Shown: in pieces, positions 3,310 to 47,913 of the stretch | Position numbering within the stretch: the first letter of the stretch is position 1 | Layout of the letters: every line of letters begins with the position of its first letter | Origin: Macrostomum lignano | Taxonomy: Eukaryota | NCBI GenBank assembly: GCA_002269645.1 | Contig: NIVC01003511.1 | Coordinates: forward strand, 30,374-94,373 | Reading direction: 5' to 3' | Length of the DNA: 64,000 nucleotides | Notes under the pieces: model-generated | The model's input: only the letters and a program-made list of their open reading frames with translations | The model's database searches: none | What the model was told of the DNA's origin: nothing | Program-made: the position numbers and the translations under genes

Positions 3310-4170
3310 TCATTGTCTTAGTTCGGCATCCATATTGGCCTCTTGACCGCATTCTTCCTGGACGTTGCTTTCGTTTCCTGACGTTGTTTGTTGCAGCCGC
3401 ACGAGTCCAAAATCGGTACCACACCGGAGCTTCTTGCAAGTCCGTGTCCTCTGGCAGGGATGTTCCCAGCATCGGCTGAGGGCATCTGAGGGCGTTGAAG
3501 TCACCGGCTGGTTAACGATCGTCAGCTCTGTTGGTTAGCGGGCATCCTCTCTGCTCTCATTCAGTTCAGTCTTGACTGGTAGCTTCACGGTGTCAAAATC
3601 ATCTTCATCAGTGTCAGATGAGCTCAGCTCGTACTTCATTACTTAACTTGTCATCCAGCTGGAAGCTTCCCACGTTTTTGCCTCATGAGCGAAGGCAGGG
3701 GCAGGGTGCATGAGTTTCACGAACTCCTCACAACAGTCCTCTGACAGTCGCTTAAACCAAATTATTCTTTGTCTGACTTCGACGAACTTGTCGAAGCCTA
3801 ACTTCACCACCTTAGTTTCCCTGCTTAGAGCGGCCTCACGAGGGAGCGGTTTACCTCTTTCAGTTTCGCCTACTGACGCATATTGAGGTTGAAGCTGGGA
3901 ACTAAAGGCTTGAGGCTGATGACGCTGCCTTATTGCTTCATTATTGCAAAAAAATTCTGTCTTTAGAATTTTGGCTACCCTAACGTACGTGCCTCACAGA
4001 ATCGTCTTTCGCAGATTCGCAAATACTTTTTTCAAAGCTGCTCCCTTTGCGCTAGTATATCTATGGCGGAGTGGGGTGAGTGCCGGAGGGAGGATGCTGG
4101 GAAAAAGGCTTGGTTGGTTACATTGGTACGTCTCACTCCAAATGCATAGCACTTCACACTCTGCAGGCAT
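3310..4170 (-). pseudogene. Decayed ORF of unknown function, possibly part of the Maverick relic
   Basis: A minus-strand TATAAATA at about 4207-4214 precedes an ATG (MPAECEVLC). A long frame REAALSRETKVVKLGFDKFVEVRQRIIWFKRLSED...DAELRQ is interrupted by two in-frame stops. No family recognised. Confidence 0.3.
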
Positions 4171-4699
4171 AATGCTAGGCTGGGTTTTCAAATAGCTCGT
4201 TAAGCAGGTATATTTATAGCTACTGAGGCTTCCATATGAATAGGTTTTTATTTGCTGTCTAAATTAAACGAGTCAAATTTTCAACATTAAAACAGTACGT
4301 GCAGTGACAGAGACTAACGTCTACAAAACTATACGAGTACACCTCTTGTTTATAACTCGATTACGCTTATCATATTTATAACTCCGGTTAGCGCAGAGTT
4401 GTGCAGCTCCACAACGACACTGCCCTAATCTTTAACATTGCCGCCTATCTCCCTAGGGAAAGTGCGTCAGCGTTCAACTAACCCACACTACTATCCGCCT
4501 CAGTCCATTTAAACAAATTTCTCTGCACAGAGAGAGCTCAGAGATTTCAGTCCGTGACAGCGGGACTTTTGCTGCTGCTGCTGAGCTGGCAGGCAAATTC
4601 GCTTGAAGAAGAGCAAAGCACTCAGTTTGAAGCCGTGTGGAACAGCTGCGGCAGACAGCAGATCGGCAGAGAAGTGCTGCTAGGAGAAGCAGTGTAGCC

Positions 4700-7304
4700 A
4701 TGGCAACAGAGATGGAGCAGAAGCTGAGACAGGCGCTGGAGTCTGGAGACAGCGAGGAGCTGCAGCGACTGTGCGGTGAGGTCGGCAGCAACATCGAGCT
4801 GAAGGTGGGCGGGTTCGACAAGCAAGAATATCCCTTTAGGCAGCGTCGCCGAATGCCGCTGGCCCATCACTTGGCCTGCAAGCCGGTGAGTTCGTCCTGC
4901 CTGGAGCTGCTGATTGACAGATTCGGACCCGGCTGTCTGACATATATAAATGACAGTGATCAGACTCCAGTGCACTTGGCAGCCCAGCATCAGGACGAGT
5001 CTTGGATGAAGCTGGTTAAAGAGAAAGGAGGCAGAGGCTGTCTTAGAAATGTTGATCAGTGGGGGCAGACAGTCGCTCACTTTGCCGCTATGAACAGAAA
5101 AAGCAGTTCTTGTCTAAAGTGGCTGGTGAAGGAGCTCAGCGGCGACTATCTTACAGCTCCTGATAAAGACGGTGACACGGCCGTTCATTTGGCCGCTAGG
5201 CATAAGGGCATCGAGTCGCTGGAGTGGATCAAGAGACAGATCGGAACTGACTGCTTCCGGCTGAAGGGGTGGTTGGATAGAACAGCATTACACTTTGCTG
5301 CTCAGAAGTCTGACAATTCAAACCTGAAGTGGCTGGTGAAGGAGCTCGGCAGCGACTGTCTCACAGTTCCTGATGAATACGGGAGCACGGCCATCCATTT
5401 GGCCGCTCTGTATCAAGGCATCGAGTCGCTGGAGTGGATCAAGAGACAGATCGGAACTGACTGCTTTCGGCTGAAGGGATTTTGGGATAGAACAGCATTT
5501 CACAGTGCTGCCTGGAAGTCTGACAATTCAAATCTGAAGTGGCTGGTGAAGGAACTCGGCAGCGAGTGTCTCACAGTTCCTGACAAAGAAGGTGACACGG
5601 CCGTCCATTTGGCCGCTCAGCGGCAGCCAGTCGACTCTCTTCAGTTCATTTTTGATCAAATCGGAGCCGAAACGTTCAGCTTAAAGAACAACAAGGGCAA
5701 AACACCGGCTAATATTGTTGAAAGTGATCGGTGCCGAACAGACCAGTCAGCAAAGCGGGCCTTGATTCCCTCTACGCAGCGGCGGCTCGAAGCCTCTCGG
5801 CCTCCCGCTGGCAGTTCAGCGCCGACTGCCGCCTCAGCTGGGTGAGTCCTGACTGAGAACTGCAGCCTGACACTGAAAATACTAAAAATATTTTTGGTGA
5901 GAATTAATTGCGCTTTGATGATCGGCGCCCTGAAATTCTCATCAGAGCCACAGTAAAGTGAGGGCGTCACGAATTTGTCAGGGCAGCTCCTCATGGCGCT
6001 TCAACCTCCTGATGGAAGATATTCGCCTCATTCGCTTCCCACAGCGCTGCAGCTCCGCGTCCCCGCCCCCGAGCGCGCGAGCGGGTCAAGCCGTCTGGGC
6101 CGTCCGAGGGGGGACTTTCTGAGGAGACTGGGTGAGTCCACGCGGGGAGACACGGAAGGTTGGTGACACAAAGGCTGAGTGACTCCAAAGTACCAGTACT
6201 TAGGAAGCCCTAATCAACACAAAATTCATCGGATTCCTTCACCTCAATGTTTTCAGCGCCAAGAAGCAGCTGGACCCCAGCTTCACCGACTGGGACTTCA
6301 TCCTGCAGGACAGCAAGAAGCAGCTCATCGGCCGTGGTGCATTCGGTGAGGTGTACAAGGCCCTTACAGATCGTATCCAGACGGTGGCTGTCAAGGTGCT
6401 GCCCCTGAGCGGCACCGGAGAATCGGGGAAGTTGCAGAAAGCCGTCGAGATGGAGAAGCGGGGAGTTGAGATTCTCAAGCGACTCTCACATCCCAACATT
6501 GTGCAGTTCCTCAAGTGCGAGCAGAAGTCGGATGGGCTGTACATCTTCACCGAGCTGGTCTCGGGTCACAGCCTCTTTGAGCTGATGAAGCGTCAGAACA
6601 AGCCGTTCCAGGAGTCCTGGGTCAGGGACTTCTCCAGACAGGTGCGTCTCTGGGCTCTCTGGCATTGCCTGGCATGTGTGGAATCAGGTGGGATCAGTGT
6701 GGGATCAGTTTGCGATCAGTGTGTGCGATCAGTGTAGGATCAGTGTGGGATCAGTGTGGGTGAGATCCAGAATGGATAGATGCATTCTCATGACTGCTCA
6801 AAACTGCTACACCTGCAGATCTGCTCAGGCCTGAACTTCCTGCACTGCCAGCCGGAGGGCGCTATCTTGCACCGAGACATCAAAAGCGGAAATATAATGC
6901 TCACCAACGAGGGAGTCATCAAGCTGATCGACTTCGGTCTGGCCAGGGAGATATTCACCACCTGCGGCTTGAGCGCAGGCAACCCGCCAAAAGGCACCTG
7001 GCACTTCATGGCGCCCGAGCTGTTCATGGGCGAGGGTGACTCGATTCCGTACTCAGCCAAGACCGACGTGTGGGCCTTCGGCTGCACCGTGTATGAGCTG
7101 ACGGCCATGCAGCCTCCTGACGCGAACGTTCAGAAGTTCAGGATCGCCGTTCTGAGGTGCGGAGGGCGGGCGATGCCTCGGATTGCGGATGGGTTCTCAG
7201 CCGGCCTGAAGGACTTCTACCTCAGGTGCGTAGACTATGACCCGAGGGAGCGAGCGGACACTGCGGAGCTGCTGCGGCACAGCTTCCTGAGTGCCTCATC
7301 GTGA
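4700..7304 (+). CDS. Ankyrin-repeat + STE11/MAP3K-like Ser/Thr kinase, copy 1; join(4700-5841,6257-6641,6819-7304), 670 aa
   Basis: GT-AG introns with compatible phases (2 and 0) give 2013 nt. There are 8 full ankyrin repeats of about 35 aa (TPVHLAA, TAVHLAA, TALHFAA). The kinase has GRGAFGEVY, VAVK, HRDIKSGN, DFG, GTWHFMAPE and DVWAFG. Confidence 0.9.
6677..6762 (+). repeat. 11-bp GTGGGATCAGT repeat in intron 2 of kinase copy 1 (about 7 units)
   Basis: Visible tandem units. The equivalent intron of copy 2 has about 15 units. Confidence 0.85.
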
Positions 7305-9455
7305 CTGCGAGAGCGATGGGCTGTGAGGGAGCGGAGCGACTTTCGGTCGGTCTGTCGGTTTTGCTTGCTGACACAGAATGTTGTCTGTTAATCATTGAGT
7401 TTGATAGTTTATTTGATTATTAGTGGCTCTTTTTCTTTATCTAATTGCAATTTTTTACCCGATTGCCCTTTGGCCTTTTGTTATCTAATTTTTGCATCCC
7501 TGGGCTTCGAGGTCTGTAGCGAGCACAGGGTACACATTAGTATACAGTCCCTTGCTTGCATGCGTCACGACACACTTACATAGTTAGCGCCTTAGCGGTA
7601 GAGGCTGACGCCCAGCCAGTGTCAACTTTTGGCCTTGCTGATTGTTTAGTTGCTTCACAAGTAATCTGGCAGTAAGGAACTGTCTTGTGCGCAGAGCGGG
7701 AAAGGAGGGACAGAGAAGCGAGAAAGGCACTTCCCCAAGACACGGAGGGAGCCGCTATAGCCACTGCCTGGAGAGTGGGAAAGGCCACAAACCCTCTAAC
7801 CTAGCACCCCAACACCGACCCAGCCGAACGGCCGCCCAGCCCAGACCACCACAGACACAATAACAACAAAGGGCAAAACTGGCCGCAGCCAATCAGCAAT
7901 GCGCTAATCACAAAGCACCCATCCAGTGCCGCACAATACTAGGGGGGGACCACTACGAGCATACTTACAAAGCCTGAGCGGCCGCCAACCGCACCCCAGC
8001 AAACAATCCCCAAGCAGCCCAAAAAAGGTAAACAGTAATAAAGAGAAGCGGTTTAAGCCAGCTGTCTGAGGCAGACACAAGGGTGGAGGCACGGGCGCCC
8101 AGCTGCCTCTACGGGAGCTGACTCCAAGCATGGTTCATGTGATCTACCAAGTTTTTCAAGTTAAGTGATTTGAAAATGATTGTAAGAGAGTTGAGAAAAA
8201 TTCGGTACTGAATTCCGTCTCAACTTTTATTTTTGTTGTTTTGAAATGACACACTTTACGATACCAAGATCACTATGTATAACATAAATTGCATGACGAT
8301 AAGTGCCCTGCTCGAAGGCATGGAAATGAAAGTAAGAGAGAAAACTCGAACAAAATAGAATGGCAATTGGTTAGGATAAAGTTAGTGTCAGATAACTTAT
8401 AAAGCTGGGCAGTAAGTAGAATAAAATTTATATCAAAATTCTAAAAAAAGCAAGCACATATTGTAAGACAGTAGATACTCAAATAGATATTGTGAAAGGG
8501 GAATTCCAAAATGGAGGCCTAGAAATACCTAAAAGTGGCACTAAGCAGAATTTTTGTTCTGCTCCTTCTTGAATCAAGTGTGTATATAATAATGATAGAT
8601 TTTGTGACGAAAAATTCATTTTTTCCTATCTCCGCATTGTATATTTTTCGAAAATCGGCCTCCAAAAAGTACTCAATATTTGACTTTTACAACCTGTTGC
8701 ACTACAGTGGTCCGTGCATAGTTACCAAACGTTAGGCTCTGATTTTGGTCCCGGCCAAGCCCCTTTGACTTCCCAAATCGTTGGTTTGCTCCATATAGTG
8801 AAGAGCCTCTGAAGTCTGAAGACGACTGCCGATTAGCCTAACTTGAAATTCCATCAGTTTCAGCTGCTCATATAGCTACTCGTAGGTCTGCTAATAATCA
8901 TCGTGCGAATTCAGTTTGCAGCACTGATCTTTGTATACCTCTAGCCATCTGTTTAGCATTGTGGTTGACTTTCGTAGAGTACAGTTTCGGTCGCAGCAGA
9001 ATCCATTCCTTTGTGCCAACCAGCGGGTGCATCCTCCATGCAACCTCAATATTGAGCCTTCAGGTCATCCCACTTTAGTGGATGTTAAGCTGGGTAGTTG
9101 GACGTCTCTAGCAGATGTTGTTCGACTAGTTTAGCTGCAAGATGTAACCGTGAAAATCAAGTCTCTTAAAACTCAGAAAGAAAGAGTCTGCCTCTCCCTT
9201 CTACTAAAAACTGCTTCGAAGTAACGTAACTAGCTAAAAAAAAATCTGTCACAACCTAATTGTACGAGCGGAACACTACTTTCGAAAACTGCAACTTTAT
9301 ATTTGATAAATACAAAGTCGTAAATGAGCAAACGACATATTTTTCACTGAGATGTTATTACGAATATATTTAAAGCAGAATCTCAGCTTTCTGGGATAGA
9401 ATGCAGGTGAAAATCGGTAATAAAAACAAAGGAAGAAACTTTGATTGGAGGCGTG

Positions 9456-11041
9456 GCCGCAACCCTAAGGGTCTCTTGCTTGCCGCAACCCTAAGGGTCT
9501 CTTGCTTGCCGCAACCGTAAGGGTCTTTTGCTTGCCGCAACCCTAAGGGTCTTTTGCTTGCCGCAACCCTAAGGGTCTTTTGCTTGCCGCAACCCTAAGG
9601 GTCTCTTGCTTGCCGCAACCCTAAGGGTCTCTTGCTTGCCGCAACCCTAAAGGGCTTTTGCTTTCCGCAACCCTAAGGGTCTCTTGCTTGCCGCAACCCT
9701 AAGGGTCTTTTGCTTGCCGCAACCGTAAGGGTCTTTTGCTTGCCGCAACCCTAAGGGTCTCTTGCTTGCCGCAACCCTAAGGGTCTCTTGCTTGCCGCAA
9801 CCCTAAAGGGCTTTTGCTTTCCGCAACCCTAAGGGTCTCTTGCTTGCCGCAACCCTAAGGGTCTTTTGCTTGCCGCAACCGTAAGGGTCTTTTGCTTGCC
9901 GCAACCCTAAGGGTCTTTTGCTTGCCGCAACCCTAAGGGTCTTTTGCTTGCCGCAACCCTAAGGGTCTCTTGCTTGCCGCAACCCTAAGGGTCTCTTGCT
10001 TGCCGCAACCCTAAAGGGCTTTTGCTTTCCGCAACCCTAAGGGTCTCTTGCTTGCCGCAACCCTAAGGGTCTTTTGCTTGCCGCAACCCTAAGGGTCTTT
10101 TGCTTGCCGCAACCCTAAGGGTCTCTTGCTTGCCGCAACACTAAGGGTCTCTTGCTTGCCGCAACCCTAAGGGTCTTTTGCTTGCCGCAACCCTAAGGGT
10201 CTTTTGCTTGCCGCAACCCTAAGGGTCTTTTGCTTGCCGCAACCCTAAGGGTCTCTTGCTTGCCGCAACACTAAGGGTCTCTTGCTTGCCGCAACCCTAA
10301 GGGTCTCTTGCTTGCCGCAACACTAAGGGTCTCTTGCTTGCCGCAACCCTAAGGGTCTTTTGCTTGCCGCAACCCTAAGGGTCTTTTGCTTGCCGCAACC
10401 CTAAGGGTCTTTTGCTTGCCGCAACCCTAAGGGTCTCTTGCTTGCCGCAACCCTAAGGGTCTCTTGCTTGCCGCAACCCTAAAGGGCTTTTGCTTGCCGC
10501 AACCCTAAGGGTCTCTTGCTTGCCGCAACCCTAAGGGTCTCTTGCTTGCCGCAACCCTAAAGGGCTTTTGCTTGCCGCAACCCTAAGGGTCTCTTGCTTG
10601 CCGCAACCCTAAGGGTCTTTTGCTTGCCGCAACCCTAAAGGGCTTTTGCTTGCCGCAACCCTAAAGGTCTCTTGCTTGCCGCAACCCTAAGGGTCTCTTG
10701 CTTGCCGCAACCCTAAAGGGCTTTTGCTTGCCGCAACCCTAAAGGTCTCTTGCTTCCCGCAACCCTAAAGGGCTTTTGCTTGCCGCAACCCTAAGGGTCT
10801 TTTGCTTGCCGCAACCCTAAGGGTCTCTTGCTTGCCGCAACACTAAGGGTCTCTTGCTTGCCGCAACCCTAAGGGTCTCTTGCTTGCCGCAACCCTAAGG
10901 GTCTCTTGCTTGCCGCAACCCTAAGGGTCTTTTGCTTGCCGCAACCCTAAGGGTCTCTTGCTTGCCGCAACCCTAAAGGGCTTTTGCTTGCCGCAACCCT
11001 AAGGGTCTCTTGCTTGCCGCAACCCTATGGGTCTCTTGCTG
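9456..11041. repeat. 26-bp tandem satellite GCCGCAACCCTAAGGGTCTCTTGCTT, about 61 copies
   Basis: Period measured 9456 to 9482. Variants include a 27-bp form (CCCTAAAGGGCTTT). No unique spacers. Confidence 0.97.
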
Positions 11042-11274
11042 GGCGCCGATGTCTTTTGTTAAACCCCGCTGTCTCCAGGTGTGGACCGGTATCTCGGGCC
11101 GGTTGGAGGTACATCCAAGAGTGGCAAAAGTTGAGCTCGCTCATCTCATTTATCAAGTTTTGTTGCCTCGCATTTTTTCTTGGAGTAAATATGGGAAAAC
11201 TATAGGAGATTCATCATGGGAGAAATTTTATTTTTTTATTTAGTTTTCAAAGTATGTGCCTTCACCAAGCGCCA

Positions 11275-11855
11275 CATGGAAATCTCCTGTTAGACATGGG
11301 AGTCTCCTGTTAGATGTTTGAGAGTACGCATTTTCCAGTTTTCAACAGTTCAGTACAGGAGAATAAAAAAATTTTTTATAGCTATTACAGAGTTCCAACG
11401 ATGTATCAAAGCTTTATATAGGAAAGGTAATGACCTGCGTGTGGACATCTAACAGGAGACTCCCATGGCTAACAGGAGACTCCCATGGCTAACAGGAGAC
11501 TTCCAGGGTTAACAGGAGACTCCCATGGCTAACAGGAGACTCCCAGGGTTAACAGGAGACTCCCATGGCTAACAAGAGACTCCCATGGCTAACAGGAGAC
11601 TCCCAGGGTTAACAGGAGACTCCCATGGCTAACAGGAGACTCCCAGGGTTAACAGGAGACTCCCATGGCTAACAGGAGACTCCCATGGCTAACAGGAGAC
11701 TCCCAGGGTTAACAGGAGACTCCCATGGCTAAAAAGAGACTCCCAGGGTTAACAGGAGACTCCCATGGCTAACAGGAGACTCCCACGGCTAACAGGAGAC
11801 TCCCACGGCTAACAGGAGACTCCCACGGCTAACAGGAGACTCCCACGGCTAACAG
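11275..11855. mobile_element. MITE/foldback-like element whose inverted arms are built of a 20-bp unit; the right arm is expanded to about 20 copies
   Basis: Left arm 11275-11317 (2 units, catgggagtctcctgttaga) is the reverse complement of the right arm, which starts at 11445 (acatctaacaggagactcccatggct...) and repeats AACAGGAGACTCCCATGGCT to 11855. Confidence 0.65.
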
Positions 11856-12187
11856 TCAGGACACAGCGGGTCACGGCAAGTCAGGACACAGCAGGTCACG
11901 GCAAGTCAGGACACAGCGGGTCACGGCAAGTCAGGACACAGCGGGTCACGGCAAGTCAGGACACAGCGGGTCACGGCAAGTCAGGACACAGCGGGTCACG
12001 GCAAATCAGGACACAGCGGGTCACGGCAAGTCAGGACACAGTGGGTCACGGCAAGCTAAACGGTGTCTGTATATTTAACTGAGAACTCTTGAGTAAGCAC
12101 TGGGCTTCCTGCTCCAACAGTTGCTAGTAAAAGTTCAGTCCAAAAATCATGCAAACACAAAAATCAGTTGCTCGGAAAAAGCGCCTC
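11856..12187 (+). mobile_element. Dispersed repeat: 25-bp minisatellite (TCAGGACACAGCGGGTCACGGCAAG, about 8 copies) plus a conserved flank of about 130 bp
   Basis: The same array and the same flank (aaacggtgtct..ttgagtaagcactggg..ccaacagttgcta..gtccaaaaatca) recur at 26236-26580. Confidence 0.75.
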
Positions 12188-13154
12188 TGACGAGGGCGAT
12201 GGCTCTGGTGGTGTCGGTCGCGCAAAGGTACATAACTTGGTAGCCTGGTCCGTCCAAACGACCTGTTGCGCCCTTCAGCGACTCCAGCTGGCAGGCCACA
12301 TCATCCGCGCCGAGTCGTACTGACCAGAGCCGGTGCAGGCCGGTGCTGCTGCTAACGCTACAGGCCACCCTATCGGCCGGGGCAGGCGCGCACTCGGCGC
12401 CTGCTGGTTGACGCCGGCGCCCCGGATTCGACCGGCGGCGTGGCGTTCATTCGCGACCTGGCCTTGAAGAGCGCCCTGCGTATTCTGTTGTTGTTGTTGG
12501 TAGCCTGGAAGCATGCAGGTCGGCTTTTCCATGCGGGTATACGGTTAATGAATAAGGTAGATGTCAACATCCTTGTTGTCGAAAGTGCCTGTAAGGTTGC
12601 CAGATGCTGCGAGAGCTTGGAACAGGTTGATATGAATAATGTGCAGGTTTACTGGTTGGTTCGCCGGAGGCGGATTGCCAATGATTTGGTTGCTGGTCGC
12701 AGTGTCATATTTCGGCTGGCCAGCAGGGTTCGCCCTCAGAGCCCCGCTCCTAGTTTGACACAGCGTTGCGAACGGCATTACTCGTTCCCAGAGCTATCCG
12801 AGCTCGCGGACTCGCCTCTGCGTCGATCGCCAACCGGGCGACGCCTGGGCAGCAGGTGGAAGACGATCTTCCACGCCCCGACGTAGGCTTCCAAATCGCT
12901 CTTTCCGAGGACGTTTTCCCACTCAGCCGAGAAACCCATGTACGGGGTCTTACCGGGGAGCCCGGCGCGAATCTCCTCGATGCTCCTCGAGCCGGAGTAG
13001 AAGGCTCGGTAGCGCCTACAGGGCGGCGTGGTCGGGCACGCTCAACGACCATGGGTGGGACAGCGGTCGCGCAGTGTCCCAGGAGATGGACACAAGCTTT
13101 GCCAGCGCGAGCTCAAGCTGGGCCTCGTCCTTGAAGGCGAGGATGACGCTGCCG
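12188..13154 (-). mobile_element. Internal fragment of a LOA/R1-type LINE (ORF1 C-terminus + APE N-terminus), same family as 43434-47913
   Basis: ORF 12545-12778 ([17 protein letters not shown]...HIIHINLFQALAAS) aligns with 44007 onward. Homology spans about 43560-44330 of the long copy. Confidence 0.9.
12249..12496 (+). mobile_element. 5'-truncated RTE-like LINE 3' end (248 bp) with a (GTT)n tail and a 12-bp TSD, inserted in the LOA fragment
   Basis: TTGGTAGCCTGG occurs at 12237-12248 and 12497-12508 and splits the PGYQ codons of the LOA APE. The insert translates LQRLQLAGHIIRAES, like the RTE C-terminal RRLxxxGHxxR motif. Confidence 0.8.
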
Positions 13155-14055
13155 CGGAATTTTCGTCTCTCGAGCCGTATCGAATGGTCTAGAAATCCAT
13201 GCAGAGTAGGCTGGAATGGAGAAAACTGAATTGTAGAAAAATGGGGTAGGTAACCGCGCGGGGACTGGATATACCCCAGCCAGCTCCGAGGAGCTACCCT
13301 CTGTCACAGTAAACAACAGAGAAGCTTTGGATTGCCGTCTTACCACAGGATTGCTTCCAGGCGAGGCCCCGGCAGGCCCCAGGTCAACACTGCAAGATCA
13401 GGGGGCGGGAGGCCGGCTGTAGGTTTGGGACCAGACGCCAGGTCAGAGTGACAGCTGACGCCCAAGCCCTCCTCCACAGAAGTGGCCCTTGAGAACAGTC
13501 AGCAGCCAACTACTCAGCAGCCACCTGCCCAGCAAAAAGGCAGCAGGGGGGATCTGTTCTCCCACAGCCAGGCCTGAGCGAAAGAGGAGGGAGAAACCTC
13601 CTCGGAAACGAAAAGCTGGCAGATGTCACTGAGTCCCTCGGTTTAAGTTGCCATTTCCCCCCCTCCCCCATTTGCTGTATAAATTAAACGAGTCAAATTT
13701 CCAAAATAACAACAAAACTCGGAATGCCACAGCCTAATGTTTACAGCGCAATGCGACTCTCAGGTAAAACTCCGGCTTATCTTATTCAGAACTCCGCTTA
13801 TCGCACAGTGGTGCTGCTGCATTCCGACACTGCCCTATACTTTAAGACTGCCGTGCCGCCTATTTTCGAAATGCAAGTGCGTCAGAGTTGAACCAAGACA
13901 TGCTACTTTTAAGGACAGATCACTTTTGCTGCTGCTGCTGAGCTGGCAGGCAAATTTGCTTGAAGAAGAGCAAAGCACTCAATTTGAAGCCGTGTGGAAC
14001 AGCTGCGGCAGACAGCAGATCCGCAGAGAAGCGCTGCTAGGAAAGAGAAACCGGC

Positions 14056-16730
14056 ATGGGGAACACTCGAAGTGTAGCCAAGGCAACAGAGATGGAGCGG
14101 AAGCTGAGAGCGGCGCTGGAGGCTGGAGACAGCGAGGAGCTGCAGCGACTGTGCGGTGAGGTCGGCAGCAACATCGAGCTGAAGGTGGGCGGCTTCGGAA
14201 TGCAAAACCTTTTCTTTAGAAAGCTTCTTAAAATGCCGTTGGCCCATCACGTGGCCTGCAAGCCGGTGAGTTCGTCCTGCCTGGAGCTGCTGATTGACAG
14301 ATTCGGACCCGGCTGTCTGACACATATAAATGACAGTGATCAGACTCCAGTGCACTTGGCAGCCCAGCATCAGGACGAGTCTTGGATGAAGCTGGTTAAA
14401 GAGAAAGGAGGCAGAGGCTGTCTGAGAATTGTTGATAAGTGGGGGCAGACAGTCGCTCACTTTGCCGCTATGAACAGAAAAAGCAGTTCTTGTCTAAAGT
14501 GGCTGGTGAAGGAACTCGGCAGCGACTGTCTCACAGCTCCTGATAAAGACGGTGACACGGCCGTTCATTTGGCCGCTAGGCGCTGGAGTGGATCAAGAGA
14601 CAGATCGGAACTGACTGCTTTCGGCTGAAGACAAAGTGTGATAGAACAGCATTTCACTTTGCTGCTCAGAAGTCCGACAGCTCAAATCTGAAGTGGCTGG
14701 TGAAGGAGCTCGGCAGCGACTGTCTCACAGTTCCTGACAAAGAAGGTGACACAGCCGTCCATTTGGCCGCTCTGTATCAAGGCATCGAGTCGCTGGAGTG
14801 GATCAAGAGACAGATCGGAACTGACTGCTTTCGGCTGAAGACAAAGTGTGATAGAACAGCATTTCACTTTGCTGCTCAGAAGTCCGACAGCTCAAATCTG
14901 AAGTGGCTGGTGAATGAGCTCGGCAGCGACTGTCTCACAGTTCCTGACAGAGACGGTGACACGGCCGTCCATTTGGCCGCTAAGCATCAGCCAGTCGATT
15001 CTCTTCAGTTCATTTTTGACCAAATCGGAGCCGAAATGTTCAGTTTGAAGAGCAACAGGGGCATAACACCGGCTGATGTTGTTGAGAGATTTTGGTTACT
15101 CAATGACCAGTCAGCAAAGCAGGCCTGGATTTCCTCCACACAGCGGCTGCTCGGAGCCTCTCAGCCTCACGCTGGGTGAGTCCTGGCAGAGAGATGCTGC
15201 ATGACTGACGCTAAAATGCTGAAAATATTTTTGGCGAAAATTCATTGCGCTTTGATGATCGGCGCCCTGAAATTCTCAGCAGCGCAGCAGTCAAGCAAGG
15301 GCGTCACGAATTTCTTGGGGCAGCTCCTCATGGCACCCCCAAACTTCCTATGGCATCCCCAATCTCTTCATGGCACCCCTAAACCATGCCCTGGCGCCCC
15401 AATTTCAAGGTGTTTTTGGAAGGTAAAAATATGACAGTACAGATGTCGGCATTTAAGGTGCGACTCAGTGAGTCCGCGCTTAAATATGGGGCCAGTGTAG
15501 GTGAAGCAGAGGGTTGTGCCGCGGAATGCTGAGTGACTCCAAAGTACTCCGAAAGCCTCAAACAACTCAAAATTTATTGAATTCCTTTACCTAATATTCC
15601 CAGCGCCAAGAAGCAGCTGGACCCCAGCTTTACCGACTGGGACTTCATTCTGCAGGACGAAAAGAAGCAGCTCATCGGCCTTGGTGGATTCGGTGAGGTG
15701 TTCAAGGCCCACACAGACCGCAACCAGACGGTGGCTGTCAAGGTGCTGCCCATGAGCCAAGCTGAGCAAGACGCAGAGGAACTGAAGATAAAAATTCTGA
15801 TGGAGAAGCGGGGAGTTGAGATCCTCAAGCGACTCTCGCATCCCAACATTGTGCAGTTCCTCAAGTGCGAGCAGAAGTCGGATGGGCTGTACATCTTCAC
15901 CGAGCTGGTCTCGGGTCACAGCCTCTTTGAGCTGATGCAGCGTCAGAACAAGCCGTTCAAGGAGTCCGGGGTCAGGGACTTCTCCAGACAGGTGCGTCTC
16001 TGGGCTCTCTGGCATTGCCTGGCATGGGTGGGGTGAGTGTGGGATGAGTGTGGGATGAGTGTGGGATGAGTGTGGGATGAGTTTGGGATGAGTGTGGGAT
16101 GAGTGTTGAATCAATGTGGGATCAGTGTGGGATCAGTGTGGGATCAGTGTGGGATCAGTGTGGGATCAGTGTGGGATCAGTGTGGGTGGGATCTGGAATG
16201 GCTAGATCCAACTTGATGACTGCTCAAAACTGCTCCACCTGCAGATCTGCTTAGGCCTGAACTTCCTGCACTGCCAGCCGCAGGGCGCCATCCTGCACCG
16301 TGACATCAAGAGCTCTAATGTGATGCTCACCAACAAGGGTGTCATCAAGCTGATCGACTTCGGTCTCGCCAAGGAGATCGTCGGCACCAGCGACCTGAGC
16401 GACGGCGTCGATCCCAAAGGCACCCTCTACTTCCTGGCGCCCGAGCTGTTCATGGGCGATGGCGAATCGATTCCGTACTCAGCCAAGACCGACGTGTGGG
16501 CCTTCGGCTGCACCGTGTATGAGCTGACGGCCATGCAGCCTCCTGACGCGAACGTTCAGCAGTTCCGGATCGCCGTGCTGAGGTGCGAAGGGCGAGCGAT
16601 GCCTCAGATTGCTGACGGGTTCTCAGCCGGCCTGAAGGACTTCTACCTCAGGTGCGTAGACTATGACCCGAGGGAGCGAGCGGACACCGCGGAGCTGCTG
16701 GGGCACAGCTTCCTGAGAGTCTCATCGTGA
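14056..16730 (+). pseudogene. Ankyrin-repeat + STE11-like kinase, copy 2; exons 14056-15175, 15604-15991, 16245-16730; 16-bp deletion at about 14580 frameshifts exon 1
   Basis: Paralogous to copy 1, including introns and upstream DNA (about 13670 vs 4250). It lacks cataagggcatcgagt relative to copy 1, giving a stop at 14628. The kinase motifs are intact (GLGGFGEVF, VAVK, HRDIKSSN, DFG, APE). The N-terminus is MGNTRS. Confidence 0.85.
16025..16190 (+). repeat. 11-bp GTGGGAT(G/C)AGT repeat in intron 2 of kinase copy 2 (about 15 units)
   Basis: The period is 11 bp. The 5' units carry GATGAG and the 3' units carry GATCAG. Confidence 0.9.
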
Positions 16731-16804
16731 CTGCGAGAGCGACGGGCTGTGAGGGAGCTGAGCGACTCCTGAAGCGGGCGGCTTTGCTTGCTGATGTTGT
16801 CTGC

Positions 16805-17670
16805 TTTTGTTTATCTGATTGCCGTTTTTGTTTATCCGATTGCCCTTTTTTTATCCGATTGCCCATTTTGTTTATTCGATTGCCCTTTTGTTTATCCGAT
16901 TGCCCTTTTGTTTATCCGATTGCCCATTTTGTTTATCCGATTGCCGTTTGTGTTTATCTGATTGCCCATTTCGTTTATCCGAATGCCGTTTTTGTTTATC
17001 CGATTGCCCTTTTGTTTATCTGATTGCCCATTTCGTTTATCCGATTGCCGTTTTTGTTTATCCGATTGCCCTTTTGTTTATCCGATTGCCCATTTTGTTT
17101 ATCCGATAGCCGTTTGTGTTTATCTGATTGCCCATTTCGTTTATCCGATTGCCGTTTTTGTTTATCCGATTGCCCTTTTGTTTATCCGATTGCCCATTTT
17201 GTTTATCCGATAGCCGTTTGTGTTTATCTGATTGCCCATTTTGTTTATCCGATTGCCGTTTTTTATCCTATTGTCATTTTTGTTTATTCGATTGCCGTTT
17301 TTGTTTATTCGATTGCCGTTTTTTATCCGATTGCCGTTTTTGTTTATCCGATTGCCGTTTGTTTATCCGATTGCCGTTTTTTATCCGCGATTGCTGTTTT
17401 TGTTTATCCGATTGCCGTTTCTGTTTATTCGATTGCCGTTTTTTATCCGATTGCCGTTTGTGTTTATCTGATTGCCCATTTCGTTTATCCGATTGCCGTT
17501 TTTTATCCGATTGCAGTTTTTGTATATTCGATTGCCGTTTTTGTTTATTCGATTGCCGTTTTTGTTTATCCGATTGCCATTTTTGTTTATCCGATCGCCG
17601 TTTTTGTTTATTTGATTGTCGTTTTTGTTTATTCGATTGTCGTTTTTTATCCGATTGCCGTTTTTGTTAT
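16805..17670 (+). repeat. Minisatellite of about 21 bp (TTTGTTTATCCGATTGCCGTT) with a 104-bp higher-order period, downstream of the kinase copy 2 stop
   Basis: The ttgcccattt variant recurs at 17024, 17128 and 17232. Confidence 0.92.
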
Positions 17671-18601
17671 CCCAGTGTCATTTTTTTTATATAACTGTTT
17701 TGTTTTTTGAACTGCTCAGATTTGAATTTATTATCCATTTCTCTATCAATTTTCCTGCTGCTATCAGATGTTCGAATCAATTATCCAGTCATAGTTTTGT
17801 TTATTCAGCTGCGACCCGCAACTTAAATTTTGACTTCCGGGTTTGTTTTACTGGTTGCTCCTTTCACAATGAGACATTTTTGTGCTGACTTGAGTGCTAT
17901 TTCAGTTTTAAGCTGATCAAGGTTGATTTTGAAACTCTGGCACAAAGACAATCCCAATTCTCTAATCTACTCAAACTGCTCAATGCCTACTCCAGTGTAG
18001 TGTGAGCGTCTTGTGTTAATTTTTGAGTTCTATTAGCTAGTTGATTGTATTGTTGTCGATAATTAATTTGCTTATTTTAGTCACGCGTTTTTTCAATGTA
18101 CTTTTTGTCTCTTGAATAAAACAGATGAGTAGTTTCACCACCTTCGAGAGTCCTGCTTGTGTTGAGACTCGAAGAAAAAATCAACGCCGAACCCCATCTG
18201 CAGCGGTCCGCCTCAGTCCGTCCCAGAGCGAGCCAAGGTTCACGTAGTCGGGCCACTCACCCATGGCAAACAGGCTAACCGGGATCTGCACAAGCAGCGG
18301 GGAGCCGTAGCAGTCCTGCATCTGAAGCCGATTTCCTGGCTTCTCATCGATTCTGTCCAGCTTCCACTCGGACTCGTCCAGCATCTGCCAGCCGTCGCAG
18401 TCAATCCAGTGTGGAAAGATGATGAAGAACCAGAAAGCTCCCCCACTCAGACTCATCTAGGATGTCAACAACTCGTCTCGCCGTGGTCTTGAGCAGGATC
18501 TCCTCGAACGGCGGGTTGAGCACCCAGCCACCTTGATGCTGCATCAAGTGCTGAATCAAGGATTCGCTCGAACAGCAGGTCGATGCGGCGCACGCTGGCC
18601 C

Positions 18602-19605: not shown

Positions 19606-20012
19606 GCTGGCGCCCCTCTCTGCAGCTGGCGCCACTCTCTGTAGCTGGCGCCCCCTCTGTAGCTGGCACCCCTCTGTAGCTGGCGCCCCTCTGTAGCTGG
19701 CGCCCCCTCTGTAGCTGGCGCCCCTCTCTGCAGCTGGCGCCACTCTCTGTAGCTGGCGCCCCCTCTGTAGCTGGCACCCCTCTGTAGCTGGCGCCCCTCT
19801 GTAGCTGGCGCCCCCTCTGTAGCTGGCGCCCCTCTCTGCAGCTGGCGCCACTCTCTGTAGCTGGCGCCCCCTCTGTAGCTGGCGCCCCTCTCTGCAGCTG
19901 GCGCCACTCTCTGTAGCTGGCGCCCCCTCTGTAGCTGGCGCCCCTCTCTGCAGCTGGCGCCACTCTCTGTAGCTGGCGCCCCCTCTGTAGCTGGCGCCCC
20001 TCTCTGTAGCTG
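19606..20012. repeat. 17-19-bp GC-rich minisatellite (GCTGGCGCCCCCTCTGTA variants)
   Basis: Visible tandem units. The minus strand has no stop codon in any of the three frames. Confidence 0.92.
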
Positions 20013-20608
20013 AGCCAAATTTGCCAATTCTGCTGACTCCTGAGCACACACAAGTGGCACGCACTCATACAAACGCTCACACAGGGTGTACAACGGCTTT
20101 TTGACCTTCCAATCTTCAGGCATGTACATTGTCAGTGCCTTGGGGCTGGCCCTCATGGCTGTGAATCGCACGGCCACCCAGTGTGTCCAAGAGAGCCTCA
20201 TGCAGGACCCTTCCAACACATTTTACAAACACATTTTACCTGCCCAATTACAAAGTGGAACCTTCGCAGCTGAGAGACCGGTTTCACTATCAGCGAGTCG
20301 GTTGTCAGAGCTGCTCCGCCGAAAGTCAGCACCGCTTCCAGCTTCACTGTCAGCATCATCTTTGCTCTCTGCTGACTGCTCTCTGTCAAATATTCGCTCA
20401 GCAGGTCGTGTCTATGCGACAAAACGATGGTCGACTCCCAGCGGTGGGCGCTGGTGAGGTTCCGCCTGAGGCGCTCCCAGTTTTTACCGGCCGGAGTGGC
20501 GCCCATCGGCAGCCAGATGAAGATGAGCTGAGGCTGCATTATCCAAGCACAGCTGAGCAGGCTCACCTGTGATTGCAGTGGCTTTTGAGTCAAAAGAGTT
20601 ACAGTAAT

Positions 20609-20840
20609 CCTCTCCTCTCCTCTCCTCTCCTCTCCTCTCCTCTCCTCTCCTCTCCTCTCCTCTCCTCTCCTCTCCTTTCCTCTCCTCTCCTCTCCTCTCC
20701 TCTCCTCTCCTCTCCTCTCCTCTCCTCTCCTCTCCTCTCCTCTCCTCTCCTCTCCTCTCCTCTCCTCTCCTCTCCTCTCCTCTCCTCTCCTCTCCTCTCC
20801 TCTCCTCTCCTCTCCTCTCCTCTCCTCTCCTCTCCTCTCC
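20609..20840. repeat. (CCTCT)n pentanucleotide microsatellite, about 46 units
   Basis: Near-perfect polypyrimidine/polypurine tract. Confidence 0.98.
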
Positions 20841-22150
20841 CCTCCCCTCTCTCCTGTCAATTTTCGCCTCGCCTCTCCTTCATTCCATTGCCTCCTCTTC
20901 CTTCTATCCTTCGTCTGTATTCCCTTTGGCATCTCCTCTCGTTCCTCCTGTGTTCCTCAGTCATGGTCTGGATTCTCGACCCCTTGAGGTAAAAAGTTTC
21001 TCGACCCCTGATTGAAACAAAGATGTAAAGCAGCTACAGTTAAATGTAATCCATCTCATTTTCTCAATGCCTAACTTTATCAGTCTTAATTACCATGCTG
21101 AATGCTAACAAATGCATACACAGAATGACATTATGAACCCATCATGTCCATTCACCAATTCGTGAAATCGCAAGTCGGTCCCGCCAGACCCATCGGAATC
21201 TGCACTGCGCACTCGCGGCAGCACAAAGTGAGCAACATTGGGCACGGGGCTGCTCATGGATGCAGCTCTGCTGGCAACGTCTTGCAGATGTCGAACTTCG
21301 AGTCGCCTGCCCGAAGGCGAGGTCAAGCGCCAAGTACCTGTGCTGAAATGGGCCAGCGTGGATGGCGGTACCACCTGCGGCAGCTGGTCCTGCTTGGTCA
21401 GCGACAGCCGAGCAAGCAGCCCCTGCAGACTGCTGAGGCTGTCGCTGATGGAGCTGGTGAGTCTGCGGCAAATTTGAGATGTTGGCGAAATGCGACTGGC
21501 GATTTTTTGGTCACCGCCTTGAGTTGCTACCCGGGGTTTTGATGGCTCGGGAGTGTTCGGCTGCCCGTCCGTAGCATTTGCTTCTGTCATGCCAAAGAGA
21601 TGATTTAAGTGCGAAATATTGCGTCTCAGATAGAATAATCACATTCTTGTTTTTCATTTTTCATTTGATTTATTGTACATTTAGTTTCATTCAGTGTGAG
21701 TTTTATCATCACATGGGTCTTCATTAGGGGTTTATTATGGTGGTCTTCGACTTTGTTTTATCATTGTTTTTAGGGACTTTTCGGTTGTCATCAGGGCTCT
21801 TGGTTATCTGCGTTCAATACGCAATTTTTAATTCAGAAATGAATGCTCACCAGAACTACTGTTAGTAGCACTTCGATTGCCACTATTGGTCTCAGGCTGG
21901 TGCGAATCGATTTCCAACGAAATGGTCAAAGTTTCAGTAGCCCAGATGCAAAGCAGCAGAGCGACTGAGGCAGCGACCAGCTTTGATGTCGGCATTTGCT
22001 GCTTTTTCCCGATGCAAAAGCAATCAAATGTCACGACCAACAAATCTTTAGACTTGTAGAATCGATAATATCATCGGTAATTACCTTGAAACATTATCTC
22101 TCTGGAGAAGGCTGCACTGCTCATCAATATGTCTATGGCCTGAAGCTTGT

Positions 22151-22460
<310 letters not shown>

Positions 22461-22461
<1 letters not shown>

Positions 22462-25190
22462 CCCTTCTACGGTGCTGCGGGTGCCGGTGGCGGCTTCAGT
22501 GGCGGCGGCGGCGGCGGGTCCTGCTGCTCCGGAAGCGGCTGCAACTTCACTGCTGTTGCTTCTTCTTCTTCTTCTTCAGACATGCGCACCGCGATCGACG
22601 AGGGTCGGAGCTGAGGACCGCAAGGGGGGGGGGGGCACGGGGTGCCGAACTGGTGGGTGCGACGACCACACAGGGCCGGGCACGCACAGAGCCAGTGCTC
22701 CACGGTTTCAGGTTCCAGGTTGCAGAAGGGGCAGGAGGAGTCCGCCGACGCGTCAAGTAAGGCGTGGTAAGCGCGGAGCGACCGGCAGTGGCCAGCCCGG
22801 AGTTGGGCGAGCAGGCGCTGGTCGGCCCGGCAGGTGACGGCGGCGCGGTCCTGAGCATGACTAACGAGTTCGTAGGCGGCGGACGTGCGCGGGTGGCTAG
22901 GATGGTCAACGATATGGCGCTGACAGGCAGCCGCGGCCGCGCGGAAGGAAATAGGAGACGAGGGGTCGGCAGGCGACTCCCCTCCTTGGCCAGGTGGTCG
23001 GCGAGCTCGTTCCCGGGAATTCCGCAGTGCCCCGGGATCCACTGAACCACGACGTCCGTGTCAATGCGGGCGAGCGAGGTCAGGGCGCGGCCGATCGAGC
23101 GGTTGGAGTTAGACAGGGCCACCACCAGGCTTTGACTGTCGGTGCAGAAGACGAAACGGCGAATAGAAACAGAATCGGCAGCCCAGGCGAAGGCGGCGAC
23201 TTCCTCATCGAACGAGGAGGTAGCAGGGGCGCCGCGGAAGGAAGCCGAGTGCAAGATGGATGGGTGGGCCGGGTCGCTTTGGGTGACAACGAAGGCGTGG
23301 CCGCCGGCCGAGACCCCTTTCTGGGCGAGGCCGTCAGAGTAGATGACCAGGGAGGTGCCTGGAGGGCTGTGCAGGTGGTCACGGACCCGGTCCAAGGCGC
23401 GGGCGCGGAAGTCCGAGTCGGAGAGCACCAACGCTGGACCGAGGGAGTGGTCGAACACGCGGGTGCGATCAGGCGGTGGAGGAGGAATCACGGCATCGGC
23501 AGGGTAGAGCGGAAGGCGGGGGGCCATGGTCAACGGAAGACGCTCCAAGAGGCGAGAAGCGGCCTGGCGCCAGCTGGATCTGACCAGGCGGTGCTGTACC
23601 GTACCATCCGCGGCACGTCGTCGAGGGTGATTCGGCGGGAGGCGAAGGGCCTTCTCCCAGGAGCGGGCGAGCAGGCGCAGGCTGTGGGTTCTGTAGCTGG
23701 GAACGTCGGCCTCCAGTCTGATGGCGTCCACCGGGGACGATTGGAGTTGGCCCGTGATGATGCGGAGCGCCCGGTTTTGACAGCGATCGAGGTCATCAAT
23801 TAGCGGGACTCGCTCAGCCAGGGCTGCCAGGCGGGGGCAGCATAGTCCAGCACTGAGCGGATCAGCGCGTTGAAGACCAAGCGGAGTTTATCTTTGCGCC
23901 AGCCCCAGTCCTGGTTGGCAAGCGCGGCGAGCACGCGACAGCGGCTGCGGGCCTTCGAAACGAGGTCCCTGACGTGAGGGCCAAAGCTGAGGGTGCGGTC
24001 CAGGACGACGCCGAGAAAGCGCGGGTTGGCGTCAAAGGGCAGAGACGAGCCGTTGAGAAGCAGCTGTGGTTGAAGTGACGCCTCCGCGGTCAAGTTGGAG
24101 AAGAGCGACACCACGCTCTTGGACGGATTTAGCGTCATCTTCATGCGCGCACTCCACTCAGCAGCAGCGTCGAGTCCAGCCTGGAGGGACTCCGTGGCGG
24201 AAGCGACCGACGAGTGCTACGCGCGGATGGTGAGGTCGTCGGCGTAGAGTGAGGGGGTGATCGCGGGAGGCATGGTGCGAGCGACGCCATCGATGAAGAG
24301 CCGAAAAAGGAACGGGGCGATCACCGAACCTTGGGGCAGGCCTTGGCGGAGAGGCAGAGGGTGGCTCAAGGCGCCATTGACGTTGACGCGGGCGGAGCAG
24401 TCGCATAGGAAGGCGAAACACCATCTCACCAGCGGGGCCGGGGCCTGGAAGTCCAGCATGATGTGGACGAGCATTTGTCTCCACACACGGTCGAACGCTC
24501 TACTGTAGTCGAGCAGGGCGACGAGTGTCCGAAGGTGTGGACGAAGCTGGAAGCCGTCGCTGATGGCTTGGACAAGCTCGAGGACGAGGTCCTTACAGGA
24601 GCGGAGGCGGCGGAAGCCAGCTTGGCAGTGATGGATCCAGCCGTGACTCTCAGCGAGATCGTAAAGCCGGATGAAGATGATCCGCTCAAGGAGTTTGACC
24701 ACACAGGATGTGAGGCTAACTGGGCGGAAGCTGTCGACGCGGCAGGCCGGCTTACCGTGCTTGAGCAGCGGGATGATGGTGGCGCGGCGCCAGTGAGCCG
24801 GGACGGTCCCGGTCAGAAGCGAGATGATGCAAGGCTGAGCGGGGCGGTTAGCGGGCGTAGCCGGATCGGCCGGATCAGCCAGGGGTGGCGGCCGGCCAAG
24901 GTGGTGATGCTGGAGTTGGGAGGAGCATCGCGGTCAGGATGGAGCGAACAGGTCCAGGAAGGATTCCGGGCGTAACGCGAGGCCCCGGAGCAGGAGCAGT
25001 GGCACGCCGAATCGCATCCCGGGACGGAGCAGTGAAGGTGGCAAGCACCACGGCGGAAAGCTTTGCCGCTTTGCCGCAGCGAAAGCAGACGGTGCATCTG
25101 CAGTGCTCGGTCGCGGCGGAGGCAGGGTACGGAGCCGGAGCTGCCTGCGGTCTGATGGCGTCCGACGGCCGGTGAAGAAGGCAGAGCCAG
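22461..25190 (-). mobile_element. 5'-truncated I/Ingi-group LINE: RT + RNase H + CCHC zinc knuckle, disabled
   Basis: RT motifs FRPVSLTSCVVKLLERI, LDYSRAFDRV, GLPQGSVIAP and YADD. RNase H motifs IYSDG, FCTDSQS and WIPGHCGIPGNELADHLAK. Knuckle CPFC..ETVEHWLCAC. There is an in-frame TAG at 24217-24219 and frameshifts near 23810, 22980 and 22630. No APE domain; the 5' boundary is approximate. Confidence 0.9.
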
Positions 25191-25986: not shown

Positions 25987-26000
25987 GTTGCCATGGCAAC
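25987..26000. promoter_or_regulatory. Perfect palindromic RFX X-box GTTGCCATGGCAAC
   Basis: Exact match to the X-box consensus. No target gene identified nearby. Confidence 0.35.
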
Positions 26001-26235
26001 TGGAGCAGCTCTGCAGCGTCTGTGCAGTTAAGGGCTCTGCACATCTCCTGCTCACTGCGTGAGGGGCCGAGCCGTGAGGCAGCCTCAGACCTCATGACAC
26101 TCTGCAAGCCCTTTGAAAACAATGGCCAGCTTCATTGCATGCCTGCTTCATCAGCTCTGACTTCCCCACACTGTTGTGTGCATTGCACTGAGTGGGGCTC
26201 AGAAATGATGCTGCGAAATATTGAAATATGAAATG

Positions 26236-43266: not shown

Positions 43267-47913
<4,647 letters not shown>

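Follow-up and report, generated by a model that had tools for sequence, protein, structure and literature searches.

An ankyrin-kinase gene family of Macrostomum lignano with diversified double-ankyrin units, a putative non-NLR intracellular sensor

Introduction

Diversified repeat-based recognition domains are known from plant leucine-rich repeat (LRR) receptors and lamprey variable lymphocyte receptors (VLRs). A family of genes which encode ankyrin repeats followed by a kinase, and whose repeats are diversified at a few positions, is described here from the flatworm Macrostomum lignano (Eukaryota). The window, that is, the whole stretch of DNA that was analysed, has 64,000 nucleotides (NCBI GenBank assembly GCA_002269645.1, contig NIVC01003511.1, positions 30,374 to 94,373 of the forward strand) and is numbered from its first letter. 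It contains two members of the family, gene 1 (Mlig031600g2), at 4700-7304, and gene 2, at 14056-16730. An earlier note on this DNA had proposed tandem ankyrin-kinase genes of a diversifying family in the interval 4700-16730, whose two ends coincide with the ATG of gene 1 and the stop codon of gene 2, and every peptide string quoted in it is present in the open reading frames (ORFs) of the two genes.

In its mode of evolution the family comes closest to the repeats of fungal NOD-like receptors (NLRs), where the Podospora HET-D/E/R nwd family shows highly internally conserved (HiC) ANK, TPR and WD repeats (Dyrka et al., 2014, PMC4986451). As in the fungal receptors, the M. lignano repeats are near-identical, variable in number and shuffled or converted within and between paralogues, and show positive diversifying selection on few positions at the hairpin and inner helix, the predicted binding face (PMC4986451). 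Internal conservation of this kind is rare in animals, where it is reported for about 0.8% of ANK/TPR/WD repeats (Dyrka et al., PMC4986451). Unlike the fungal NLRs, the M. lignano family has N-terminal repeats, a C-terminal kinase output and an animal host, and what is repeated is a unit of 70 amino acids (aa) made of two different ankyrin repeats, not a single one. It also differs in the NOD domain: no match to NACHT or NB-ARC is found with Pfam in the gene 1 product or ten relatives, and therefore the family is not an NLR.

In designed ankyrin repeat proteins (DARPins), the positions that Binz and colleagues randomised in 2003 are reportedly the residue before D, two after D, one before T and two after AA. 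DARPins have six variable positions per repeat (PMC6590788). Like DARPins, the M. lignano units show a consensus-like invariant scaffold, with nine of the 12 equivalent positions per double unit hypervariable; unlike DARPins, they are natural, germline-encoded and part of a domain fused to a kinase.

RNase L has an ankyrin domain that binds the activating ligand and drives dimerisation. The gene 1 product shares with it the order of N-terminal ankyrin domain and kinase fold, and Foldseek retrieves RNase L (6m11) over the whole length, with a weak full-length TM-score of 0.27. RNase L contains a pseudokinase and a KEN nuclease, whereas the M. lignano kinase keeps all catalytic motifs and the protein ends with the kinase domain, KEN being not present; RNase L is also a single-copy gene, and its ankyrins are not hypervariable. 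TNNI3K and ILK show the same ankyrin-then-kinase order and are conserved, low-copy genes without hypervariable repeats. TNNI3K (P0060) is matched over 68% of the query, weakly (E=1e-25, 26% identity, against 1e-36 to 1e-43 for STE-group kinases), and with TNNI3K weaker than the STE group the kinase domain does not show orthology to the TKL-group TNNI3K/ILK. The architecture had been called non-canonical for an animal MAP3K; N-terminal ankyrins with a kinase do have animal precedent, TNNI3K and RNase L being among the matches.

Variable positions of the double-ankyrin units

The ankyrin array is built from a unit of 70 aa (210 bp) which contains one repeat of B type, ..RLK-xxxx-RTAFHFAA-xK-SDNSNLKWLVKELGSDCLTV, and one of A type, PD-xx-G-x-TAVHLAA-xx-QGIESLEWIKRQIGTDCF. 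Genomic loci were fetched for eight paralogues, ten loci on eight contigs were examined, and 38 units from ten genes were codon-aligned, the allelic copies of locus L001 being left out. Twelve DARPin-equivalent columns per double unit (x33, x2, x3, x5, x13 and x14 of each repeat) were fixed a priori, and the repeat register was checked independently with the Pfam Ank hidden Markov model, which aligns residues 194-219 to profile positions 3-27.

Most scaffold columns are invariant among the 38 units. Entropy exceeds 1 bit at columns 18, 19, 21, 22, 23 and 31 in the B repeat and at columns 55, 56, 59, 67 and 68 in the A repeat, and nine of these 11 columns are at DARPin positions (hypergeometric P=1.7e-7). 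The other two, 18 and 22, are adjacent hairpin-tip residues, and the hairpin also varies in length. Among the DARPin-equivalent columns, 17, 32 and 53 are conserved and the remaining nine hypervariable. The units thus depart from DARPins in the variation of columns 18 and 22 and of hairpin length, and in the conservation of x33 and x14 of the B repeat. Half of the pairwise amino-acid diversity (6.49 of 12.73) is carried by the 12 a-priori columns (permutation P=5e-6). The window alone (four units, six pairs) shows 36 amino-acid differences in the 12 DARPin-equivalent columns versus 22 in 51 scaffold columns. A near-identical scaffold with differences at DARPin-equivalent positions, as first noticed in the two window genes, is therefore borne out and becomes stronger with the paralogues. 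In the AlphaFold2 (AF2) model of the gene 1 product, DSSP places the variable residues in the loop before the inner helix and in the last residues of the inner helix, positions which in the canonical ankyrin fold would form the concave binding face.

Selection on units, scaffold and kinase

Selection was assessed by counting methods (Nei-Gojobori and parsimony counts), not by likelihood site models. Over all pairs, the Nei-Gojobori nonsynonymous and synonymous divergences (dN and dS) are 0.478 and 0.204 in the DARPin codons, and 0.037 and 0.066 in the scaffold codons. To avoid non-independence, 19 disjoint nearest-neighbour pairs were used, in which the proportion of nonsynonymous differences (pN) in the DARPin codons is 0.351. 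This is 4.4 times the overall synonymous proportion (pS) of 0.080 (Fisher P=4e-38) and 2.1 times the pS of these codons themselves, 0.164 (P=2.8e-5), the latter comparison being robust to mosaic genealogies. Scaffold pN is lower than scaffold pS (P=1.7e-4), with a ratio of around 0.3-0.4. Pairs of units with 0-1.3% scaffold DNA divergence show seven to 14 replacements in the 12 DARPin codons. Codons 19, 21, 31, 55, 56, 59 and 67 change at 4.6-9.2 times the tree-wide synonymous rate (parsimony on a neighbour-joining tree, Poisson test), a test in which recombination inflates all counts. The kinase domain shows an omega of 0.45 with a dS of 0.14, and the non-repeated N-terminal ankyrins an omega of 0.56.

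Diversifying selection acts on the binding-face codons, and purifying selection on the scaffold and the kinase; the diversified binding surface is well supported. The diversifying selection that had been proposed for the groove positions is found, with dN above dS there. An even spread of substitutions over the fold, a groove dN/dS below 1 and a conserved single-copy orthologue, which the earlier note had named as contrary to its proposal, are not what the data show: substitutions are uneven, dN/dS at the groove is not below 1 and the gene is no such orthologue. The N-terminal segment (FDKQEYPFRQRRR versus FGMQNLFFRKLLK), which had been listed among the diversified positions, lies in a variable pre-helix loop, but positive selection is not demonstrated in the N-terminal finger and loops, where pN/pS is 0.89.

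Targeted hypermutation was considered as a source of the variation and set aside: in the variable columns the codons show differences at each of their three positions and draw on every base, no single-base bias is visible, and no template-like element is seen.

Unit number and concerted evolution

The 70-aa unit structure, its concerted evolution and its copy number of 2-13 are the core of the phenomenon, and were missed by the first reading of the window. Across the ten paralogues, each gene contains from two to 13 units in an uninterrupted exon-1 ORF. The largest array is at L002 9932-13459, an unbroken exon-1 ORF of 1176 aa with 13 units, of which the annotated protein P0002 (835 aa) has five and omits eight. 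The P0002 gene model probably spliced out or collapsed repeats; the annotation therefore under-represents the arrays, and the family is probably under-counted. Units show 84-94% identity in DNA and 71-89% in protein, and a DNA identity higher than the protein identity is a signature of dN above dS. Within-gene protein identity of the units is 87.5% in L002 (13 units, 910 aa), 85% in L003 and L004 and 87% in gene 2, and ranges from 71 to 83% in the other members, including gene 1 with 79%. Repeat identity at the level of the HiC class, from about 85% upward across 100 aa or more, is found in L002, L003, L004 and gene 2.

The scaffold dS (0.066) is lower than the kinase dS (0.142), and some hypervariable signatures (SR-D-QH six times, KY-T-QH four times and GDDD-K four times) reappear codon for codon in different genes, which points to unit duplication and gene conversion. 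By these processes the scaffold is kept near-identical at the DNA level within and between paralogues. The two compared haplotypes show no difference in unit copy number. A second subfamily (P0016, L009; 45% identical) contains seven near-identical units which vary at the hairpin, the H-x-AA and the post-AA positions, and shows the same design independently.

At L006, a second, unannotated ankyrin-unit ORF of the family is located at 21504-22331, about 8 kb downstream of P0009, and therefore tandem pairs of family genes occur at other loci too.

Structure and product of gene 1

Apart from one optional exon of 87 nt, splicing of gene 1 gives a product identical to P0001, with 670 aa, or 699 aa if this exon is included. 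The exon lies in the linker and is present in the annotated P0001, P0002, P0004, P0009 and P0010 and not in P0003, P0005 and P0008. The donor of exon 1 reads GG followed by GTGAGT at 5841/5842. In the double-ankyrin units of this gene, as in the others, the scaffold is near-identical and the hairpin and post-AA codons are hypervariable. Pfam retrieves the families Ank_2 (E=1.4e-25), Ank_4 (3e-22) and Ank (1.4e-18) of clan CL0465, with the best stretches at residues ~118-246, and Pkinase (PF00069) at residues 401-666 (E=1.1e-53), which covers profile positions 3-263 of 263. The motifs GRGAFGEV (GxGxxG), VAVK, HRDIKSGN, DFG and MAPE are all legible in the translation, and from these intact motifs the kinase is predicted to be catalytically complete and of the active type.

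The AF2 model shows a mean predicted local distance difference test (pLDDT) score of 82, with values above 90 in the ankyrin solenoid, a disordered linker at residues 368-412 and values of 80-95 in the kinase. The helical repeat region spans approximately residues 50-340, where pLDDT is above 90 and helix pairs follow each other at intervals of 33-35 residues. Neither a signal peptide nor a transmembrane or hydrophobic segment is found in the gene 1 product (maximum Kyte-Doolittle value over 19 residues, 1.13), in agreement with the absence of a transmembrane segment from these proteins that had been noticed before. The coordinates of both genes and of the repeats beside them are collected in Table 1.

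Table 1. Features of the ankyrin-kinase locus, in window positions (TRF, Tandem Repeats Finder).
Feature	Position	Strand	Evidence
Gene 1 exon 1: N-terminal helices, variable finger loop, ~9 ankyrin repeats	4700..5841	+	tblastn 100% to P0001 residues 1-381; Pfam Ank families
Gene 1, two 70-aa double-ankyrin units (5216-5425 and 5426-5635)	5216..5635	+	TRF period 210, 2.4 copies; codon alignment
Gene 1 optional 87-nt exon (AAAPRPRPRARERVKPSGPSEGGLSEETG), disordered linker	6045..6131	+	AG/GT boundaries; AF2 linker pLDDT <50
Gene 1 kinase exon, N-lobe: GRGAFGEV glycine loop, VAVK lysine, alpha-C glutamate	6257..6641	+	Splice sites; Pfam Pkinase E=1e-53
Gene 1 kinase intron, 11-bp microsatellite (GTGGGATCAGT), 7.6 copies	6676..6760	+	TRF
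Gene 1 kinase exon: HRDIKSGN, DFG, APE; stop 7302-7304	6819..7304	+	Splice sites, Pfam, tblastn
Intergenic minisatellites between genes 1 and 2: 26 bp x61 (9456-11040), 20 bp x20 (11449-11855), 25 bp x8 (11854-12055)	9456..12055	.	TRF
Gene 2 exon 1, counterpart of Mlig032061g1/P0008, MGNTRS N-terminus	14056..15175	+	ORFs, tblastn with P0008
Gene 2, two 70-aa double-ankyrin units (14580-14789 and 14790-14999)	14580..14999	+	TRF, 97% matches
Gene 2 kinase exon, N-lobe	15604..15991	+	Splice/ORF reading, tblastn
Gene 2 kinase intron, same 11-bp microsatellite (GTGGGATCAGT), 14.5 copies	16028-16186		TRF
Gene 2 kinase exon, C-lobe; stop 16728-16730	16245..16730	+	ORF reading, tblastn

Family distribution and kinase class

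About 40 M. lignano protein clusters are related to the gene 1 product, after which the score drops steeply. An exhaustive HMMER search with the kinase domain covered 1.84 billion cluster representatives, and names were looked up for a sample of ten hits. At 42% kinase identity or more, every single-domain hit in the sample belongs to M. lignano, except the transcript P0035. Next in the sample comes a plant MAPKKK3-like protein with 40% kinase identity. P0035 is an intron-less transcript contig from the Logan runs SRR28338163 and SRR28338164, and its ankyrins are canonical and do not look hypervariable. The expanded family that had been supposed from the two window genes is thus confirmed by these clusters and by the ten loci examined, with P0035 as the sole sampled relative elsewhere, and as far as these sequences reach it appears to be found essentially only in M. 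lignano. Full-text literature searches for the family and for the gene identifiers found nothing relevant.

The best kinase-domain matches are STE-group kinases, with 28-31% identity to solved structures (Foldseek) in addition to the plant MAPKKK3-like match, and the motifs HRDIKxxN and GT..MAPE are shared with this group. The PDB sequence search retrieves STK25, SLK and MST4 at 6e-36 to 3e-34, MAP3K2 at 2e-32 and ASK1 at 4e-32, and Foldseek shows ASK1 and SLK on top with equal scores. STE20-type (STK25, SLK, MST4, STK24) and STE11-type (MAP3K2, ASK1) kinases of solved structure score alike in sequence and in fold, and therefore the kinase is assigned to the STE group; the narrower STE11-like label given to it previously is not established, STE11 being not separated from STE20. 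Unlike the M. lignano proteins, the STE20 and STE11 kinases compared have no ankyrin domain, and the M. lignano kinase shows no orthology to a named family.

P0015 (Mlig029208g1) shows the ankyrin domain of the studied subfamily and a kinase of the P0013/P0019 type, with HRDINCSN instead of HRDIKxxN, a combination that goes back either to shuffling of domains between subfamilies or to a chimeric annotation. Ankyrin pro-domains are described in platyhelminth caspases, and a kinase-like pro-domain in a M. lignano caspase, in a 2024 paper (PMC11463336); in flatworms, combinations of ankyrin and kinase modules with effector domains may be more widespread.

Gene 2 and the second haplotype

Gene 2 is a head-to-tail copy of gene 1, ~9.4 kb downstream, and the two show 86% DNA identity in the exon 1 region and 81% in the kinase region, introns included. 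The search of the window with tblastn shows gene 1 and gene 2 as its only family copies. The two units of gene 2 are 93% identical to each other in DNA and 87% in protein. The locus L001 is the other haplotype, or a homeologue, of window 4142-17690, with identities of 98.9% and 96.4%, and contains an intact gene 2 (P0008, Mlig032061g1) and a gene 1 truncated by a 1-bp insertion. Aligned with the L001 copy, gene 2 of the window has 16 bp (CATCAGGGCATCGAGT) deleted between 14580 and 14581, and this deletion shifts the frame and leads to a premature stop at 14626-14628. The gene 2 ORFs at 14056-14628 and 14700-15179 are in different frames, and tblastn of P0008 against the window shows residues 1-175 100% identical in frame 1 and the continuation in frame 3. 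The description of the locus as two tandem genes is right in that the copies are head-to-tail, but gene 2 is frameshifted in the window haplotype and is read there as a pseudogene. The 1-bp insertion in L001 gene 1 could be an assembly error; for the 16-bp deletion this is unlikely. Each of the two compared haplotypes thus has one frameshifted copy, which indicates that genes of the family are born and die; it is a lineage-specific, birth-and-death family.

Gene 2 and P0008 start with MGNTRS (14056-14073), which fits the N-myristoylation consensus MGxxxS/T, and therefore one family member may be membrane-anchored. Gene 1 and most paralogues start with MATEM or MATQM.

Genomic neighbourhood

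The window is unusually rich in long minisatellites (26 bp x61, 21 bp x43, 20 bp x69 and 31 bp x52) and contains the microsatellites TCCTC x50 and AGT x69. Satellite arrays are located at 9456-11040, 16805-17690, 28615-29988, 31451-33034, 20608-20855 and 22256-22461, and one 25-bp minisatellite unit is found both at 11854-12055 and at 26236-26457. Downstream of gene 2, window 19866-27641 and L001 14300-22667 are collinear only when one is inverted, with mostly 98.6-99% identity and 90-94% at the distal end, which suggests an inversion or rearrangement of ~8 kb between haplotypes, or a mis-assembly. A retroelement ORF of 1003 aa with reverse transcriptase and RNase H domains is located at 44813-47824 (+), and a second ORF fragment containing RNase H at 22547-23731 (-). 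A bestrophin exon is found at 30821-31417 (+), ~14 kb downstream of gene 2, and the paralogue P0011 in L008 also adjoins a bestrophin gene (L008 1-7532). The bestrophin neighbour at both loci suggests that ankyrin-kinase genes were spread by segmental duplication together with bestrophin.

Discussion

The family is best read as a M. lignano-specific group of cytosolic ankyrin-kinase proteins with diversified grooves and, likely, a role as a non-NLR intracellular sensor, and we hold this reading as a whole to be probable. Several points weigh against it. The per-site SLAC-type binomial test of nonsynonymous against synonymous changes is under-powered, and only column 67 is below 0.05 (P=0.028). 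Recombination among units violates the assumption of a single tree. The hypervariable codons also have more synonymous divergence, 0.16-0.20 against 0.05-0.07 in the scaffold, and part of the excess therefore reflects older lineages which were kept and not faster substitution. The pN/pS of the variable N-terminal loops is compatible with relaxed constraint, and the kinase omega together with the frameshifted copies indicates that some members are decaying. The assignment of the variable residues to the groove rests on DSSP secondary structure and the canonical ankyrin fold, and the sensor and immune parts of the reading are what we infer.

On the proposed mechanism, the proteins would consist of an ankyrin solenoid, a disordered linker and a predicted competent STE-group Ser/Thr kinase in the cytosol, and the family would form a germline-encoded repertoire of different binding grooves, all wired to the same kinase output. 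By analogy with RNase L, a ligand in the groove may relieve autoinhibition or cluster the protein, and activation-loop phosphorylation of the RD (HRD) kinase would then start a STE/MAPK-type cascade. The selective agent would most likely be changing foreign or conflict-related intracellular proteins, such as products of pathogens, symbionts or selfish elements. An immune function is plausible as a hypothesis. The more specific proposal, that this free-living flatworm has evolved a germline-encoded, NLR-independent intracellular recognition repertoire, a 'natural DARPin library' on a STE-type kinase which launches a MAPK-like defence or non-self response, is tentative.

The main rival is an endogenous, conflict-driven regulatory role, where the grooves recruit different endogenous substrates or partners and the proteins are fast-evolving regulatory or substrate-targeting kinases and not pathogen or non-self sensors; germline or sexual conflict of the hermaphrodite and control of selfish elements are examples. 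The same selection and architecture data fit this explanation, ankyrin-kinase proteins such as TNNI3K are among the distant matches, and nothing in the sequence is specific to immunity, death, TIR, CARD and NOD domains being not found in the gene 1 product and ten relatives. However, endogenous partners would need equally fast co-evolution, and the combination of a binding face with dN above dS, a concerted scaffold and changing copy number is best documented in non-self recognition repeats, those of the fungal NLRs (PMC4986451). We regard it as clearly less probable than the preferred reading.

A neutral origin of the pattern is improbable. It would hold that the hairpin and post-AA positions are an unconstrained surface, that the rest is homogenised by gene conversion and that no positive selection takes place. 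In ankyrin repeats at large, conservation is lowest at just these positions, and both the N-terminal loop ratio of 0.89 and the elevated pS in the hypervariable codons agree with it. Within the same codons, however, pN (0.351) is 2.1 times pS (0.164; P=2.8e-5), the ratio against the overall pS is 4.4, ~11 replacements in 12 codons separate units whose scaffold DNA is identical, and neutral gene conversion would homogenise the hypervariable codons too.

A modular code, by which a linear polymer such as a peptide or nucleic acid would be read at one unit per repeat through a small set of residue combinations, like that of the repeat-variable diresidues of transcription activator-like effectors (TALEs), is very unlikely. 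Near-identical repeats with few variable residues do resemble TALE repeats, and some signatures recur with identical codons in several genes, but the hairpins also vary in length. A small residue code of the TALE kind was rejected, since each repeat type shows 29 distinct signatures in 38 units, far too many. Hardly any weight is left for mosaic units made by mis-assembly or collapse of long-read repeats or by annotation chimeras: the assembly is long-read based, the 1-bp insertion in L001 gene 1 could be a homopolymer error and the annotated P0002 omits eight of 13 ORF units, but two haplotypes that were assembled independently (96-99% identical) agree in their hypervariable residues, the pattern is present at ten loci on eight contigs and in the second subfamily, and the ORFs are unbroken across the arrays.

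No description of ankyrin repeats with such evolution in an animal, coupled to a kinase and not to a NOD domain, was found in full-text literature searches. Evolution appears to have arrived by convergence at nearly the set of variable positions that was chosen for DARPins, and the natural variation of hairpin tip and hairpin length may inform the design of DARPin-type libraries. If the proposal of a natural DARPin library is true, the family would represent a new class of animal receptor kinases, for immunity or allorecognition. Innate recognition in flatworms is poorly understood, and a testable candidate receptor family in a model amenable to transgenesis and RNA interference would therefore be valuable.

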